Sequence record: NC_061446.1
Length of the DNA stretch: 64,000 nt
Reading direction: 5' to 3' (one strand)
In this document: positions 52,746-64,000 of the stretch, one piece after another
Numbering within the stretch: position 1 is the stretch's first letter
How the letters are laid out: every line of letters begins with the position of its first letter
Made by a program: the position numbers and the translations under genes
Notes under the pieces: model-generated
Seen by the model: the letters and a program-made list of their open reading frames with translations, nothing else
Told to the model about the DNA's origin: nothing
Database searches by the model: none

Positions 52746-54389
52746 ATGGCACGTATCGAAACTAACACTAATCTGGTTGGCAAAACTATCGTTCTGCTGG
52801 ACGGCACCAAAACTAAAATCGAAGATGCAATCGCGTCTGGTTATAAAGTGAAGGGCCGTTCCACGAAAGTTGCAACCCGCTGTGTTATCAAAGAAGGCGC
52901 TCACTTCCGCGAAATCGAACGCATGAACATGAGCCAGCTGGAAGATACTGGCGAAGGTTACGTTAAGCTGAAAGAAGCGAAAGCGTCCGGCAAGAAAACT
53001 GCCGTCAAGAAAGAAGCTGCCACGTCGAAAGCGTCCAGCAAGAAAGCTGGTGGTAAAGCTGCGGCGAAAGACGCGAAGCCGTCGAAAGAAAAAGAGCCGA
53101 AAGTTCGTCGTAAATCTTCCGAAGAGCAGTCCGAAGATTATCAGAATCTGGCTATGGCTATCATCAAAGGCAAAGCCAAGCCGGCTGTTGAAATCGAAGC
53201 TGTTGACGAAACGCTGACCGATACTGTTGCCAAACGTATTGTCGATCACGTTCTGTCGTCTGATATTGCGCGAGTGTGCGCTGACAACAAAACGCCGATC
53301 GCTAACGATCTGGACGTGACGTATGAAGCCGAATACGCGCCTGAAGGTAACGTGATTCAGATTACGATGAACCTGCAATACGCCGCACCGGTTAAAGTGC
53401 TGTCTCGTCCTACGCTCGAAAACGCAGAAGCTATTGCAGCCCGTGCGCAGAAGATGATCGCGCCGAAGCTGTCTAAGAAACTGGCGAAAGCGATTCGTGA
53501 AGCATTCAGTCTCGAAGACGCTAACGAGCTGGAAGCCGGTACCGTGCTGTTGTCTGACGGTGCTGAGTTCGTCTACTACGGCGAATCTGCGAAGCATCTG
53601 GGCAAAGCGCTGCTGTATGTCGTAGAGACTGACAAGTTCAAATCTGTTCTCGGTTCTACGCTGGGTGAGTATGAAATCCCCGACGCAGAAGAGGAAGAGG
53701 AAGAAGAAGTAGAAGACGAAGAGGAAATCGAAGAAGAAGAAGAGGAAGAAGAGGAAGAAGAAGACGGCGAAGAGGAAGAAGAGGAAGAAGAAGACGGCGA
53801 AGAGGAAGAAGATGCCGAAGAAGACGGTGAAGAAGCGCAAGGCGCCGAGTATGAGTTCGTCGCTGTCGAAGCTGACCAGCTGGAACTCGTCAATAAGAAA
53901 GTAACAGCGAAGTATCACGCCGCTCTGGCAGAACGCTTCGGTGTTGACGAAGAAGCGCTGGCCCCTGGTCTGATGTTGACTGACGGCGAAACTACTTTCG
54001 CTTACCTCGGCTGCGATAGCAAAGGTGGTCTGCTGGTGATTGACCTGTCTGACGACGCGGACGAAGACGACAACGTTCTGGTCTATAGCAAAGCGGATAT
54101 CAAAACGCTGACTGACTTTAGCCCTGTTATTGACAGCGGTGAAGAAGCGGATAGCGAAGAAGAAGACGACGCCGAAGACAATAGCGTTGACTTCGAGGAC
54201 GATAACGAAGAAGGCGACGACGAAGAAGAAGACGAAGATGAAGACTTCAACTTCGAAGACCTGCCGAGCGAAGACCTGGAAGATCTGTCTGACGACGAAC
54301 TGCGTGACCGCGTAGTCGAAGCCGGCCTGACCACTCCGCGCAAAGCAGACAAAATGAACGCGTCTCAACTGCGTAAGCTCCTGAAATAA
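52746..54389 (+). CDS. multidomain protein with K/A-rich and poly-E/D blocks and C-terminal HeH module
   Basis: GAGGAG SD, strongly biased codons, paralogous to the next gene. Confidence 0.85.
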   Translation: MARIETNTNLVGKTIVLLDGTKTKIEDAIASGYKVKGRSTKVATRCVIKEGAHFREIERMNMSQLEDTGEGYVKLKEAKASGKKTAVKKEAATSKASSKKAGGKAAAKDAKPSKEKEPKVRRKSSEEQSEDYQNLAMAIIKGKAKPAVEIEAVDETLTDTVAKRIVDHVLSSDIARVCADNKTPIANDLDVTYEAEYAPEGNVIQITMNLQYAAPVKVLSRPTLENAEAIAARAQKMIAPKLSKKLAKAIREAFSLEDANELEAGTVLLSDGAEFVYYGESAKHLGKALLYVVETDKFKSVLGSTLGEYEIPDAEEEEEEEVEDEEEIEEEEEEEEEEEDGEEEEEEEEDGEEEEDAEEDGEEAQGAEYEFVAVEADQLELVNKKVTAKYHAALAERFGVDEEALAPGLMLTDGETTFAYLGCDSKGGLLVIDLSDDADEDDNVLVYSKADIKTLTDFSPVIDSGEEADSEEEDDAEDNSVDFEDDNEEGDDEEEDEDEDFNFEDLPSEDLEDLSDDELRDRVVEAGLTTPRKADKMNASQLRKLLK

Positions 54390-54477
54390 GTTCGACCTGT
54401 AATACAAAACACTGATGGTAGATGCGGTTCAGACAGAGCCGCATCTCTGACAACTAAGCTGATTGAGGAATCACACT

Positions 54478-55737
54478 ATGTCAAACGCAAACAAAATCCT
54501 GTTAAACGCTCGTGTTCGTCGTCTGGACGGTACTGTAACTTTCATCAACAAAGTAAACGCGAACGGTTATAGCACCGACGCGAAGGGACCTCAGATCCCG
54601 GTCAAGCGTCTTGTAGTCGCAGGCAAAACTCTGAAAGAGATTGAGTCGCCGTTCTCGAAAGAGGAGCACGTAATCGTGCAGGGCGTATCAGTCAAACTGA
54701 ACAAGCGCCAGCAGCGTGAACTTGCTGATGGCTCGCTCGATGTTAAGTCTCTGAACCCTGACTTCGGTAAGCTGGTCTTCATCGACCCCGAAACAGGCAA
54801 AGCGACGGACGGTAAAGCCGTGAAGTCGAAAGCGAAAGATAAAGACGGTGTGAAAGCGGGTGTGAAAGCTACTCGCCAGCGCAACAAAGATATGCGCACT
54901 AAGAAAGAACGTAAGGCAGAAGTCGCTGCGTCGAATGACGAGCTGGACATGTTGCCGTCTGATAAGATTGATCGTAAAGCAGAGCTGGCCGGTATCATCG
55001 ACGCGACTGTGGCTGATGCGACAACTAAAGAACGTCGCAAGCTGTTGTCCGAAGCATTCGATATGGACTGGAAAGATGTGAAGAAGCATGGCGGTAAAGG
55101 CGTCATCAAACATCTGGGTCGCAAAGCCGCGCAGTCTGCTGTGAATAAACTGAGCGCGTGCGTAACGCAGGATGCTTTCATTAAGCAGATGCCTGTTGCG
55201 TTGAAGCGCCTGATTCAGGACGGTACGTTGACGCTTAACAAAGCGCAGATTGAGCGCGTACTAAGTGCGCTTGACCTTGACGTGAAGTTCTACAACATTG
55301 CTATGCAAACATTGCTGGGCAATCTCAAGCTGACTCTCGATCAGTCTGCTGCCGCTCCGAAAGCTGATAAGAAAGTGAAGAAGGCGAAGAAAGCAAAAGC
55401 TACTTACGCCTCGGAGAAAGAGCAAAAGCGCCGTGTTAAGAAAATGAAACACTCGCTGATCGCCCCGCCGAAGAAAATGCTGAAAGAAGCGAAGGCGCAT
55501 ATGAAAGCTGCCAAAGCGGCTATCGCACAAAAGCTGGGTATCTCTTCAAAAGAAGTTCAGCGGGGCCTGCTGGTGTATCGCGCAAACGGCGATGAACTGA
55601 TGTTTGTTGCCTGTGATATGACAGGCCCTGTGTTCATCGGTAACGATGGTGAAGTGGTGGTGATTGCCTACGCAAACGTAGAGACCGCCTTCGACTTCAC
55701 TCTGAGCAAAACTTCTGAACTGGACGCCACTGTATGA
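54478..55737 (+). CDS. K-rich paralogue of the upstream gene
   Basis: GAGGA SD before ATG 54478. Shares the N-terminal LDGT..I..A.GY domain and a C-terminal beta domain. Confidence 0.85.
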   Translation: MSNANKILLNARVRRLDGTVTFINKVNANGYSTDAKGPQIPVKRLVVAGKTLKEIESPFSKEEHVIVQGVSVKLNKRQQRELADGSLDVKSLNPDFGKLVFIDPETGKATDGKAVKSKAKDKDGVKAGVKATRQRNKDMRTKKERKAEVAASNDELDMLPSDKIDRKAELAGIIDATVADATTKERRKLLSEAFDMDWKDVKKHGGKGVIKHLGRKAAQSAVNKLSACVTQDAFIKQMPVALKRLIQDGTLTLNKAQIERVLSALDLDVKFYNIAMQTLLGNLKLTLDQSAAAPKADKKVKKAKKAKATYASEKEQKRRVKKMKHSLIAPPKKMLKEAKAHMKAAKAAIAQKLGISSKEVQRGLLVYRANGDELMFVACDMTGPVFIGNDGEVVVIAYANVETAFDFTLSKTSELDATV

Positions 55738-56117
55738 CAAACAATGAAATTCTTTTGTCAGGTATGTTTGCTCAACTGTATGCGCGGCTGATGACGGCCG
55801 CCGTACTAAAGACCTACGTGTATTACTCAGACTTGGCGCCGATTGTGTTCGGCGTTCAACTGTCGGTAATTAGCAGTGCGCAGTACGACGCTCTTTGGTC
55901 ACTGGTTAAAGAAACCATGAACGTCGATATAGCACACGGCAGGCCACCGCTTGCCGCGCTGTATGTGTCAAGGGCATCTGATAGCAAGCTGCCCGCTAAG
56001 AAGTTCTTTCGTGAGTACCACAAGCTCACGGGCAAGAATTTGTCAGAAGCTGAATGGCAAGCACTCGTCGAAAATGTGTGGGAACACTATCAACCAAATC
56101 TTCGGGGTCTTGTATGA
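55734..56117 (+). CDS. probable winged-helix-type protein
   Basis: YYSDLA....RPPLAALYV....PAKKFF pattern seen in phage and restriction-associated wHTH domains. Confidence 0.55.
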   Translation: MTNNEILLSGMFAQLYARLMTAAVLKTYVYYSDLAPIVFGVQLSVISSAQYDALWSLVKETMNVDIAHGRPPLAALYVSRASDSKLPAKKFFREYHKLTGKNLSEAEWQALVENVWEHYQPNLRGLV

Positions 56118-63392: not shown

Positions 63393-63442
63393 TAACTTCT
63401 GATCCGGCGCGCCCCTCTAGTTCTGCTGAATGAGCGAGGGGC

Positions 63443-63470
63443 AAATATTCGATAAAACTTTCGAATATTT
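63443..63470. promoter_or_regulatory. perfect 10-bp inverted repeat (operator-like)
   Basis: AAATATTCGA-N8-TCGAATATTT upstream of an AT-rich promoter region with TATAAT. Confidence 0.5.
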
Positions 63471-63607
63471 TTGTAAAAAGTTTTAAAAATCCTTGTAGAC
63501 CTATGTTGAATATAATAATGTACGTCTACAGGGAAACAAACCTGAACAAATTTATCTTTCATCCAGCGGTGAAAAACGCCGCATCAAATATAAAGTAAGG
63601 ATATCGT

Positions 63608-64000
63608 ATGTCTAAGAAAATCATCAGCGGCCTGAACAAAGAAATCAAAGCCCTGGACAAATCTGAAAAAGCCCTGGTTAAAACTGCTGCCGGTCTGAAC
63701 AAAGAAGCCGAAGCGATTGCTGCACGTCGCGAAGGCCTGGCTGCTCAGGTTGAAGCGCTGGCGAGCGGTGGTGAAGCTGCTCCGGCTAAAGCAAAAGGCA
63801 AAGCGGCTAAAGCTGAGAAAGCTGCTAAGCCTGCTAAAGCAGAAAAAGCTGGTAAGAAAGCAAAAGCTGAAAAGCCGGCCAAAGCTGAAAAAGCTGGCAA
63901 GAAAGCTAAAGCAGAAAAACCTGCTAAAGCTGAGAAAGCCGCAAAAGCTGAAAAGCCTGCTAAAGCAGACAAAAAAGCAAAAGCTGAAAAGCCGGCGAAA
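63608..64000 (+). CDS. histone H1-like / AlgP-like PAK-repeat protein (runs off the window edge)
   Basis: TAAGGA SD. MSKKIISGLNKEIKALDK coiled coil, then AKAEKPAKAEKAGKKAKAEKPAK repeats, open to 64000. Not in the ORF track. Confidence 0.85.
   Translation, partial: MSKKIISGLNKEIKALDKSEKALVKTAAGLNKEAEAIAARREGLAAQVEALASGGEAAPAKAKGKAAKAEKAAKPAKAEKAGKKAKAEKPAKAEKAGKKAKAEKPAKAEKAAKAEKPAKADKKAKAEKPAK

Follow-up and report, generated by a model that had tools for sequence, protein, structure and literature searches.

The window analysed here, the whole stretch of 64,000 nucleotides from sequence record NC_061446.1, corresponds to positions 186001-250000 of the Erwinia phage pEa_SNUABM_30 record MZ443778.1 (259,771 bp; genus Alexandravirus) and carries, towards its 3' end, a cassette of ten plus-strand coding sequences at positions 52746-64159, with locus tags 00311-00320 (here g311 to g320), every one of them annotated as "hypothetical protein". 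The last gene, g320 (63608-64159), runs past the end of the window, the part inside it being 63608-64000. Six of the ten proteins display extreme charge, and the cassette comprises the following genes:

52746 to 54389, plus strand: g311, 547 amino acids, net charge -84, isoelectric point (pI) 4.25.
54478 to 55737, plus strand: g312, 419 amino acids, net charge +30, pI 9.8.
55734 to 57845, plus strand: g313, g314 and g315, of 127, 153 and 426 amino acids, uncharged, clade-restricted and predicted to be co-transcribed with the charged genes.
57873 to 60917, plus strand: g316, 1014 amino acids, net charge -208, pI 4.05.
60975 to 61802, plus strand: g317, 275 amino acids, mildly acidic, with a coiled-coil-like N-terminus.
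61898 to 62443, plus strand: g318, 181 amino acids, net charge +15, pI 10.1.
62592 to 63392, plus strand: g319, 266 amino acids, net charge -98, pI 4.05, with 47% aspartate or glutamate (D/E).
63608 to 64159, plus strand: g320, 183 amino acids, net charge +28, pI 10.0.

A first interpretation of this DNA, made from its letters alone and referred to here as the sequence-only reading, had claimed extreme charge blocks in six genes of the island, including the hyperacidic 1014-residue protein, and the measured net charges of -208 to +30 bear this out, with g313, g314, g315 and g317 being of ordinary charge. The charge-patterning parameter kappa reaches 0.40 in g311, 0.34 in g316 and 0.59 in g319, as well as 0.40 in the phage single-stranded DNA-binding protein (SSB), all with z > 12 against shuffled sequences; the shuffles give kappa values of 0.17-0.24, compared with 0.34-0.59 for g311, g316 and g319, whose fraction of charged residues (FCR) is 0.30-0.58. 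The combination of high FCR and segregated blocks is a sequence feature that these three proteins have in common with block-polyampholyte or complex-coacervate scaffolds, which form a physical class and not a homology family. The two proteins that the sequence-only reading calls block polyampholytes, g311 and g319, are strongly net-acidic. In g312, g318 and g320 kappa is not raised and the charges are well mixed; all three are net basic, as expected from their designation as polycations, but the word overstates the case of g312 and g318, which carry basic tails or segments only.

Windows of 30 residues with at least 23 D/E occur in five proteins genome-wide, three of them encoded within these 11 kb and two in the structural arm of the genome. 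The cassette is thus the densest cluster of charge tracts, but not the sole one. The structural-arm proteins comprise (i) a 671-residue protein of net charge -131 (record positions 104805-106820, minus strand), with CxxC motifs, which adjoins the major head gene, belongs to a PHROG family labelled 'ATPase' and could be scaffold-like, and (ii) a 628-residue protein of net charge -66 (record positions 114134-116020, minus strand) with a KMPT-N domain.

Charge blocks are also present, as had been noted, in the SSB and in the protein encoded at 2484, and they recur in the protein encoded at 48145. The SSB gene (8718-9980, plus strand; gp32-like, phrog_15004) encodes a protein whose last ~145 residues alternate D/E runs of 8-15 residues with K/S/R runs; this block-polyampholyte tail displays an FCR of 0.74 and a kappa of 0.58, terminates in KKKKKKKK, and has a similar counterpart on the SSB of Pseudomonas phage PaBG. 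SSBs normally terminate in a short acidic tip, and a block-polyampholyte tail is unusual. The genes at 2484-2960 and 7268-7585 encode small, highly charged proteins that have the N-terminus MEIYVSLS in common and then diverge into different charge blocks, and are likely paralogues. For RecA, the charge blocks claimed at the termini reduce to short charged tips, basic at the N-terminus and acidic at the C-terminus. The RecA homologue (10038-12563) is 841 residues long, compared with 501 in PaBG, and contains a ~330-residue insertion, starting CFDRDTL and ending VSHNS, which looks like an intein, although Pfam at E 0.01 did not recognise one.

The same ten genes are found in the same order in other Alexandravirus species and in phages Y3, Yoloswag and JA11, that is, in four enterobacterial phage genera, with g316 identities of 33-55%. 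Over these genera, the net charges span -174 to -208 for g316, -90 to -100 for g319 and -56 to -84 for g311, and +28 to +31 for g312, +13 to +16 for g318 and +26 to +30 for g320. More distant relatives comprise (i) L011, a 278-kb metagenomic contig, with cassette proteins of -85, -95, +13, -117 and +42; (ii) the marine phage NCTB, with cassette proteins of -118, +29, -85, +11, -100 and +28; and (iii) PaBG, with cassette proteins of -60, -31, +14, -93 and +31. In all seven lineages (Alexandravirus, Y3, Yoloswag, JA11, L011, NCTB and PaBG), g319 remains between -90 and -117, g320 between +26 and +42, and g318 between +11 and +16; by protein cluster, g316 spans -161 to -199 (standard deviation 7, 30 clusters) and g311 spans -44 to -84 (33 clusters). 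The order g311 ... g315-g316 ... g318-g319-g320 is retained in every relative, mostly directly upstream of topoisomerase II, and in PaBG the cassette lies ~4 kb upstream of the sigma-SSB-RecA genes. A search of IMG/VR for related loci with the g316 alignment returned nothing, the scan being swamped by the acidic peptide pattern.

Behind these figures, the tracts themselves drift. In g311 and g316 their positions are fixed while length and sequence vary, and their coding sequence consists of degenerate GAA/GAC/AAA/GCT codon repeats, not fresh microsatellites, with lengths that differ by insertions and deletions. The g319 protein keeps about -100 with a count of its helical module of 0 (PaBG), 2 or 4 (L011 and NCTB), and g318, of which distant homologues are present in PaBG and NCTB, retains a basic tail even where, as in L011, the long one has moved to the N-terminus. 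The g316 orthologues of NCTB (420 residues) and PaBG (356 residues) were recognised by structure alone, their globular domains matching, and on these sequence and model comparisons the enterobacterial lineage appears to have enlarged g316 with helical modules and acidic tracts. Because each protein holds its net charge even as its tracts change in sequence and layout, the comparison argues that net charge itself is under selection. The sequence-only reading had named the absence of such tracts in relatives as an outcome that would speak against it; divergent relatives instead preserve the order of the genes, the positions of the tracts and the net charges.

Most of the charged proteins combine folded domains with low-complexity tracts. 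The g311 protein comprises an SH3-like β domain (14-75), a basic disordered segment (78-130), an α/β domain (150-310), a poly-E stretch (313-365), a second small domain (370-460), an acidic tract with a DFNF motif (465-508) and a C-terminal three-helix module (516-546), the AlphaFold model assigning a predicted local distance difference test (pLDDT) score of 85-92 to the domains and below 50 to the tracts. Compared with the Protein Data Bank (PDB) by Foldseek, this model gave a best E of 0.39, and the only matches of low root-mean-square deviation (2-3 Å over 45-57 residues) were weak ones to PWWP and other Tudor-type and Agenet barrels. The g316 protein comprises an N-terminal α/β domain (35-240), helical modules (275-330, 354-437 and 475-640) and a C-terminal α/β domain (683-1000), separated and followed by disordered acidic tracts (243-272, 328-350, 437-475, 639-681 and 1002-1014; pLDDT below 50). 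Its AlphaFold model, built from an 18-sequence alignment (mean pLDDT 70.5), has no significant fold match in the PDB by Foldseek (best E 0.1), and BFVD gave orthologues only. The prediction of disorder and charge patterning proposed as a check on the sequence-only reading thus agrees with it, the tracts of g311 and g316 lying at low pLDDT between folded domains and kappa being high in g311, g316 and g319.

The g319 protein comprises an N-terminal helical domain, a K-rich linker, two helical modules of 37-40 residues flanking a 73-residue tract that is 93% D/E, and an acidic tail carrying a conserved Phe (EDFDDEDEDEDDE). In g320, an N-terminal coiled-coil-like helix of ~55 residues precedes a 119-residue K/A/E/P repeat tail (39% K, 36% A, 10% E and 7% P; net charge +31) and the C-terminal tip EEDFDFEME. 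Six of the seven lineages retain [DE]F[DE]F at this tip, among them Y3, Yoloswag, JA11 (there as FEFE), L011 (EFDFQE) and NCTB (EEFDFDN), the PaBG tip being looser (DFEDFDD). Aromatic residues inside long D/E stretches recur in the cassette, comprising EDEDFNFED in g311, EDFDDEDEDEDDE in g319, a Trp in the g319 tails of L011 and NCTB, and the FDF-type tips of g320. A β-rich globular core (~40-150) lies between the basic tails of g318, for which searches of sequence and profile against solved structures disclosed no relative.

The N-terminal domains of g311 and g312 are paralogous (hhalign E 1.6e-4), and both match one L011 domain at E 1e-6 to 1e-10; all-against-all BLASTP with the low-complexity filter found no paralogy, so that profile comparison was needed to detect it. 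Residues 46-111 of g312 resemble the ribosomal protein uL24 (a KOW barrel plus extension) weakly and over ~65 residues only, with E 0.011 by sequence and profile E values of 0.0019 and 0.0097 against two chains, and no Pfam KOW or ribosomal L24 match was reported for g312; the remainder of the protein comprises K-rich segments and a helical domain. SH3, Tudor and KOW barrels form a class often used for nucleic-acid binding. Among the uncharged genes, g313-g315 have no family or solved-structure match; 309 of the 426 alignment columns of g315 are invariant, and its exhaustive HMMER search disclosed 11 representatives among 1.84 billion proteins, the longest of at most 481 residues, with no functional clue.

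The helical module of 37-40 residues, flanked by acidic tracts, is common to g311, g319 (two copies) and the protein encoded at 48145, the last of which supplies the fourth copy:

49240 to 49335, plus strand: fourth copy of the helical module, at the C-terminus of a 421-residue protein (48145-49410), with a hidden Markov model (HMM) E of 9e-5; phrog_30618 E 2.7e-11.

AlphaFold predicts the module as helix, short helix, helix, with pLDDT of about 90. Five sub-threshold matches were obtained, to SAP (E 0.017 and 0.027), LEM (0.059) and Ish1 (0.029 and 0.0025), which we take to be related HeH-type DNA-binding motifs; most copies display no such match, and searching the PDB with module profiles, built from 12 and from 20 copies, yielded no chain of the SAP or LEM type. 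Two small acidic proteins, encoded at 52173-52385 (70 residues) and 22178-22438 (86 residues), contain a bihelical segment resembling the module that is not significant against the module HMM, and the Ish1 match at E 0.0025 falls on the former. For all ten cassette proteins, Pfam, PHROGs and NCBIfam gave no functional match, and no DNA-mimic, histone, histone-chaperone or ribosomal family at threshold.

Predicted expression separates the charged from the uncharged genes. The optimal-codon fraction was computed with E. coli-type optimal codons; codons for D, E, K and A were excluded to keep the charge tracts from driving the score. The values for g320 (0.84), g319 (0.84) and g318 (0.83) rank 1-3 of the 109 arm genes, with g320 at the top, and confirm the strong codon bias claimed earlier; SSB (0.75), g316 (0.72), g311 (0.71) and RecA (0.70) also lie above the median of 0.55, and the uncharged island genes lie at 0.39-0.57. 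Genome-wide, the major head protein and a neighbouring virion protein (0.86 each) alone exceed g318-g320. Because this adaptation is close to that of the head protein, it suggests an abundance of the stoichiometric, structural type, and not of the catalytic type, with g318-g320 apparently made in near-capsid amounts.

The upstream regions of the charged genes contain several candidate control elements, by which the dedicated promoters of the sequence-only reading are confirmed in part, as tandem promoters for g311, CTGTAAA motifs for g317-g319 and an inverted repeat for g320:

52386 to 52745, plus strand: regulatory region upstream of g311, with two tandem sigma-70-like promoters.
61803 to 61897, plus strand: region upstream of g318, with three tandem CTGTAAA/CTGTAAT promoter-like motifs.
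62444 to 62591, plus strand: region upstream of g319, with two tandem TCTGTAAA motifs, at 62481 and 62537, and a hairpin between them.
63490 to 63534, plus strand: inverted repeat upstream of g320, with 14-nucleotide arms enclosing TATAAT.

The two g311 promoters each comprise a 14-nucleotide box (AAACTGGACAAAAT, at 52391-52404 and 52638-52651), a -35-like element (TTGTGT and TTGTTA, respectively) and a -10 element (TAGAAT and TATACT). The box, with the consensus (A/T)AACTGG(A/T)CAAAAT, occurs at 24574, 37783, 41206, 50216, 52391 and 52638, and so marks four other operon starts in the window; in this promoter class it is followed by a weak -35 and a TATACT-like -10, each with a short hairpin in the 5' leader. 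A -10-like TATACT or TATGAT is retained 5' of the g311 orthologues of Y3, L011, NCTB and PaBG. Between the tandem promoters, a stretch of ~140 nucleotides (52440-52580) folds with z = -4.5 against shuffled sequence and terminates in a GC-rich, terminator-like hairpin with a T-run (inverted repeat, 52515-52549); the stretch may act as an attenuating leader or give rise to a small RNA, and has no Rfam family match.

A second set of motifs precedes the 3' genes. Upstream of g317, a terminator-like hairpin (60929-60952) is followed by one TCTGTAAA motif (60966-60973). The CTGTAAA-type motif is retained 5' of the g318 orthologues of Y3, Yoloswag, L011 and NCTB, and the g319 upstream motif in Y3, JA11, Yoloswag, L011 and NCTB, with the variant GTGTAAA in PaBG. 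In the window, CTGTAAA(A/T) sites at 2667, 7589, 8671, 22125, 22694, 34865, 60966, 61806-61838, 62481 and 62537 lie 35-65 nucleotides 5' of start codons, the SSB gene being among those so preceded, and exact TCTGTAAA matches number 10 compared with 2.3 expected. CTGTAAA(A/T) probably defines a class of promoters peculiar to the phage, and the sigma factor that the phage encodes at 7631-8668 perhaps recognises it. The g320 palindrome is also found 5' of the g320 orthologues of Y3, Yoloswag and JA11 and, because of this conservation, may be an operator or regulated promoter specific to g320. The Y3 structural genes examined display a different upstream motif, CTAATTT.

With regard to the genomic setting, two small genes follow g320, and beyond them lie the genes for the large and medium topoisomerase II subunits; 5' of the cassette, the window encodes the phage sigma factor (7631-8668), the gp32-like SSB, the RecA homologue, a radical-SAM enzyme and an exopolysaccharide depolymerase. 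Because of its topoisomerase II, sigma, SSB and RecA neighbours, the cassette is assigned to the DNA-metabolism arm; the head and tail genes lie ~135 kb away, on the opposite strand. Scanned with Rfam and for tRNAs, the window gave no match. Three long minus-strand open reading frames (52740-54407, 58611-60131 and 61922-63562; 500-555 residues), antisense to g311, g316 and g318-g319, were rejected as artefacts, their translations being F/V/S-rich nonsense that arises because the reverse complement of GAA/GAC/AAA/GCT-rich coding sequence lacks stop codons. In Y3, the piece of the record covering 60000-109999 contains 1.27 kb free of annotated genes (24103-25369) within the baseplate and tail block, and a similar unannotated gap occurs at 82728-84064 in the S30 record.

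The cassette proteins resemble several known systems, each with important differences. The closest parallel for g320 is with the H1-like K/A/P proteins, including Chlamydia Hc2 and Pseudomonas AlgP and PhaF, with which it has in common a long low-complexity K/A/(P) tail of about +30 and, in the case of PhaF, what appears from its sequence to be a separate N-terminal helical oligomerising part. K/A/P repeat tails bind DNA or polyphosphate non-specifically. The L011 orthologue of g320 reaches Pfam HC2 at E 0.01 and 16 bits, a sub-threshold score (cutoff 40), and the L011 and NCTB orthologues carry AAKKP and KPAR repeats. On the other hand, g320 passes no family threshold, displays no linker-histone winged helix, interleaves Glu in its tail (KAEKPAK, in the enterobacterial versions), bears an acidic-aromatic C-terminal tip, is phage-encoded and always adjoins a protein of about -100. 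The label H1-like is therefore apt for the composition of the tail, but not for a histone H1 globular domain, which g320 lacks.

The pairing of oppositely charged, disordered proteins encoded together recalls prothymosin-α and histone H1, as well as the acidic histone chaperones (nucleoplasmin, NAP1/SET, ANP32 and the FACT tails). Histone chaperones use acidic-plus-aromatic anchors, and the cassette contains D/E tracts with embedded aromatics, for which a competitor or chaperone role is proposed here. Foldseek against the PDB, however, disclosed no nucleoplasmin, NAP or leucine-rich-repeat fold for g316 or g311, and the setting is bacterial and viral, with no histone-fold proteins, so that the likeness is a mechanistic analogy and not homology. 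Acidic-aromatic tips are also known from SSB tails, including the A-domain of T4 gp32, the terminal Phe of T7 gp2.5 and the DDDIPF of E. coli SSB; these dock partner proteins and compete with DNA. In the cassette, g320 ends in such a tip, and g319 and g311 carry similar ones close to their termini, but the g320 tip sits on a polycation and not on an OB-fold SSB, and the phage SSB itself ends in poly-K. The DNA mimics T7 Ocr, ArdA and T4 Arn are, like the acidic cassette proteins, very acidic phage proteins, the cassette members being probably early and probably abundant; known mimics, however, are small rigid folds copying the charge spacing of B-DNA, whereas g316, g319 and g311 contain disordered tracts of up to 73 residues, have masses of 30-110 kDa and match no family or PDB fold. 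Finally, condensate formers, comprising E. coli SSB, ChmC of nucleus-forming phages (PMC11077065) and the SPO1 transcription-switch condensate (PMC13401047), offer a parallel in that the cassette proteins are highly charged, blocky (kappa 0.34-0.59) and multivalent in small domains, sequence features that typify phase-separating scaffolds; they have no homology to the cassette, however, and its phage lies outside the Chimalliviridae.

The charge architecture and its conservation, the predicted disorder, the near-capsid codon adaptation, the genomic position and the common modules are what the analysis shows, and DNA binding, mutual binding, any phase behaviour and expression timing can only be inferred from them. 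The explanation that we favour, tentatively and as something short of probable, is that the cassette encodes abundant intracellular DNA-coating polycations together with polyanionic partner or chaperone scaffolds, which would organise the replicating phage DNA in a chromatin-like or condensate-like manner. According to this explanation, the cassette proteins would be very abundant, largely disordered and electrostatically complementary, and would act jointly inside the infected cell and not in the virion. The polycations would coat and bridge nucleic acid, comprising (i) g320, with an oligomerising coiled coil and an H1-like K/A/P tail, (ii) g318, with a β core and basic tails, and (iii) g312, with a KOW-like barrel and K-rich segments. 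The polyanions g319 (about -100), g316 (about -190) and g311 (about -70) would serve as competitors, or chaperones, and scaffolds, keeping the polycations soluble and exchangeable, stripping them where naked DNA is needed, and helping to surround the machinery of replication and recombination, including the SSB with its block-polyampholyte tail, with a chromatin-like or condensate-like phase. Docking would take place via the acidic-aromatic [DE]F[DE]F tips and the common helical module of about 40 residues. The sequence-only reading had put forward a coacervate compartment for replication or the nucleoid, or a histone/chaperone pair, and this interpretation is partly supported.

A more specific form of this explanation, which we regard as unlikely but worth stating, is that in jumbo phages of the PaBG/Lu11/Alexandra group a shell-free, protein-only, electrostatically assembled 'viral chromatin' or coacervate surrounds the replicating genome, with g320, g318 and g312 coating DNA and g319, g316 and g311 acting as chaperones or fluidisers that would recruit replication proteins by their acidic-aromatic tips. 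In the work of Prichard et al., Alexandra serves for comparison as a phage from outside the family that encodes chimallin (the nuclear shell), the Chimalliviridae.

Several points weigh against the proposed DNA-organising role. The charges summed at 1:1 amount to -390 for the acidic g311, g316 and g319 and to +73 for the basic g312, g318 and g320; a simple mutual coacervate of the six charged proteins is not charge-balanced at 1:1, and the polyanions must have other counter-ions, in the form of host proteins, polyamines, Mg2+ or far more polycations. The acidic tracts in two structural-arm proteins imply that tracts alone are no marker of a replication function. The extreme acidity of g316 is not universal, the PaBG orthologue having a net charge of -31. 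No DNA-binding family was found at threshold, the SAP/LEM/Ish1 and uL24 signals all being sub-threshold. In addition, the PaBG virion proteome, from which absence from the particle might be read, consists of Coomassie-visible bands only, and minor or proteolysed internal proteins would escape it.

The charge imbalance bears directly on a different explanation, in which the acidic and basic proteins are not partners and serve the take-over of the host: the acidic proteins would act as polyanionic sinks or DNA mimics for host HU, H-NS, Fis, nucleases, restriction or defence proteins, or for polyamines and Mg2+, and the polycations, independently, would act on the host nucleoid, compacting and silencing it. 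The anti-restriction DNA mimics Ocr and ArdA, being early, abundant and very acidic, provide the precedent, and the sigma-70-like promoters 5' of the g311-g316 operon, the high predicted expression, which suits titration, and a negative excess (-390 compared with +73) that implies counter-ions outside the cassette are all consistent with it. Known mimics, however, are small and folded with a fixed charge pattern, whereas here the charge resides in predicted disordered tracts with no Ocr or ArdA family match in Pfam, PHROGs or NCBIfam; moreover, the basic-acidic-basic adjacency of g318-g319-g320 across Erwinia, Pseudomonas and marine hosts favours a partnership internal to the phage over host-specific targets, and we consider the decoy role doubtful.

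The proteins might also lack any collective function, being unrelated early or middle proteins whose tracts are generic linkers, solubility tags or entropic spacers derived from codon-repeat slippage, with the clustering due to shared ancestry and module shuffling. The tracts are indeed degenerate codon repeats that vary in length by insertions and deletions, they also occur on the SSB, on the proteins encoded at 2484 and 48145 and on two structural-arm proteins, and each cassette protein has distinct folded domains. Such drift would not readily account for a net charge that is narrowly held per protein over deep divergence despite changes of layout (g319, -90 to -117 with 0, 2 or 4 modules), for the retained alternation of basic and acidic genes, for the top codon adaptation of g318-g320 in the arm, or for the conserved terminal [DE]F[DE]F motifs, which point to specific docking; this explanation, too, appears rather unlikely.

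T4 packages internal proteins and acidic scaffold-derived peptides, and the cassette could by analogy encode capsid-internal, prohead-core, scaffold or ejected proteins that are later degraded or ejected with the DNA. Codon adaptation near that of the major head protein is compatible with such a role, the 671-residue protein of -131 that adjoins the head gene indicates that acidic tracts are used in head assembly, and proteolytic processing in PaBG virions could hide proteins from gel-band proteomics. However, ~135 kb separate the cassette from the head and tail genes, which lie on the other strand; it is surrounded by DNA-metabolism genes, and its upstream motifs are unlike those of the Y3 structural genes examined. 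The Y3 orthologues carry no 'virion protein' label, although the Y3 record uses that label, and the PaBG orthologues gp124-126 and gp131 are not among the 14 bands of the PaBG virion table, which comprises gp76, 80, 81, 83, 94, 191, 202, 213, 214, 215, 240, 257, 261 and 263 (PMC7412058). Thus, neither a location in, or co-regulation with, the head module nor presence in virions was found, and on this evidence, of which the proteomic part is shallow, a capsid-internal role is improbable. The finding that these are ordinary virion proteins, which would have told against the sequence-only reading, does not emerge from this limited evidence of the 14-band table and genomic position.

A remodelling of translation, in which a uL24-like g312 and a g319 that mimics the acidic stalk protein, through its helical N-domain and aromatic-bearing acidic tail, would reprogramme host ribosomes, is very improbable: the g312 profile matches to uL24 (E 0.0019 and 0.0097) and a codon usage like that of ribosomal proteins speak for it, but the match covers ~65 residues and is under usual significance, Pfam, at E up to 1, reported no ribosomal family for either g319 or g312, for which reason g319 was rejected as a stalk protein, the sole NCBIfam ribosomal match, on g320, is far under the cutoff, and the context is one of DNA metabolism.

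The individual parts are of known kinds, comprising H1-like tails, chaperone-like acidic tracts, SSB-like tips and blocky polyampholytes; their conserved, highly expressed and paired arrangement in a phage is new, and neither the cassette genes nor such a proposal is described for these phages in the searchable literature. In a 2026 review of jumbo-phage biology, none of the terms histone, condensate, acidic, phase separation or disordered occurs, and a 2026 paper on phage SPO1 states that a role of phase separation in phage development had been unclear until then. For the question of how large shell-less phages organise, protect and package a replicating 260-kb genome, the cassette provides a testable, conserved gene set of six extreme-charge proteins, of which three are apparently produced at near-capsid levels, and the phages that carry it, infecting Erwinia, Dickeya and Pseudomonas, can be cultured. 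The net charge kept over divergent tracts offers a clean natural case of what appears to be selection on charge rather than on sequence. If the proteins coat or condense DNA, they would constitute the first paired polycation/polyanion chromatin-like system described in a bacterial virus, and could matter for how the phage escapes restriction and CRISPR, shuts off its host and packages its DNA; and, should the shell-free assembly prove true, it would represent a second way to compartmentalise and shield phage DNA.

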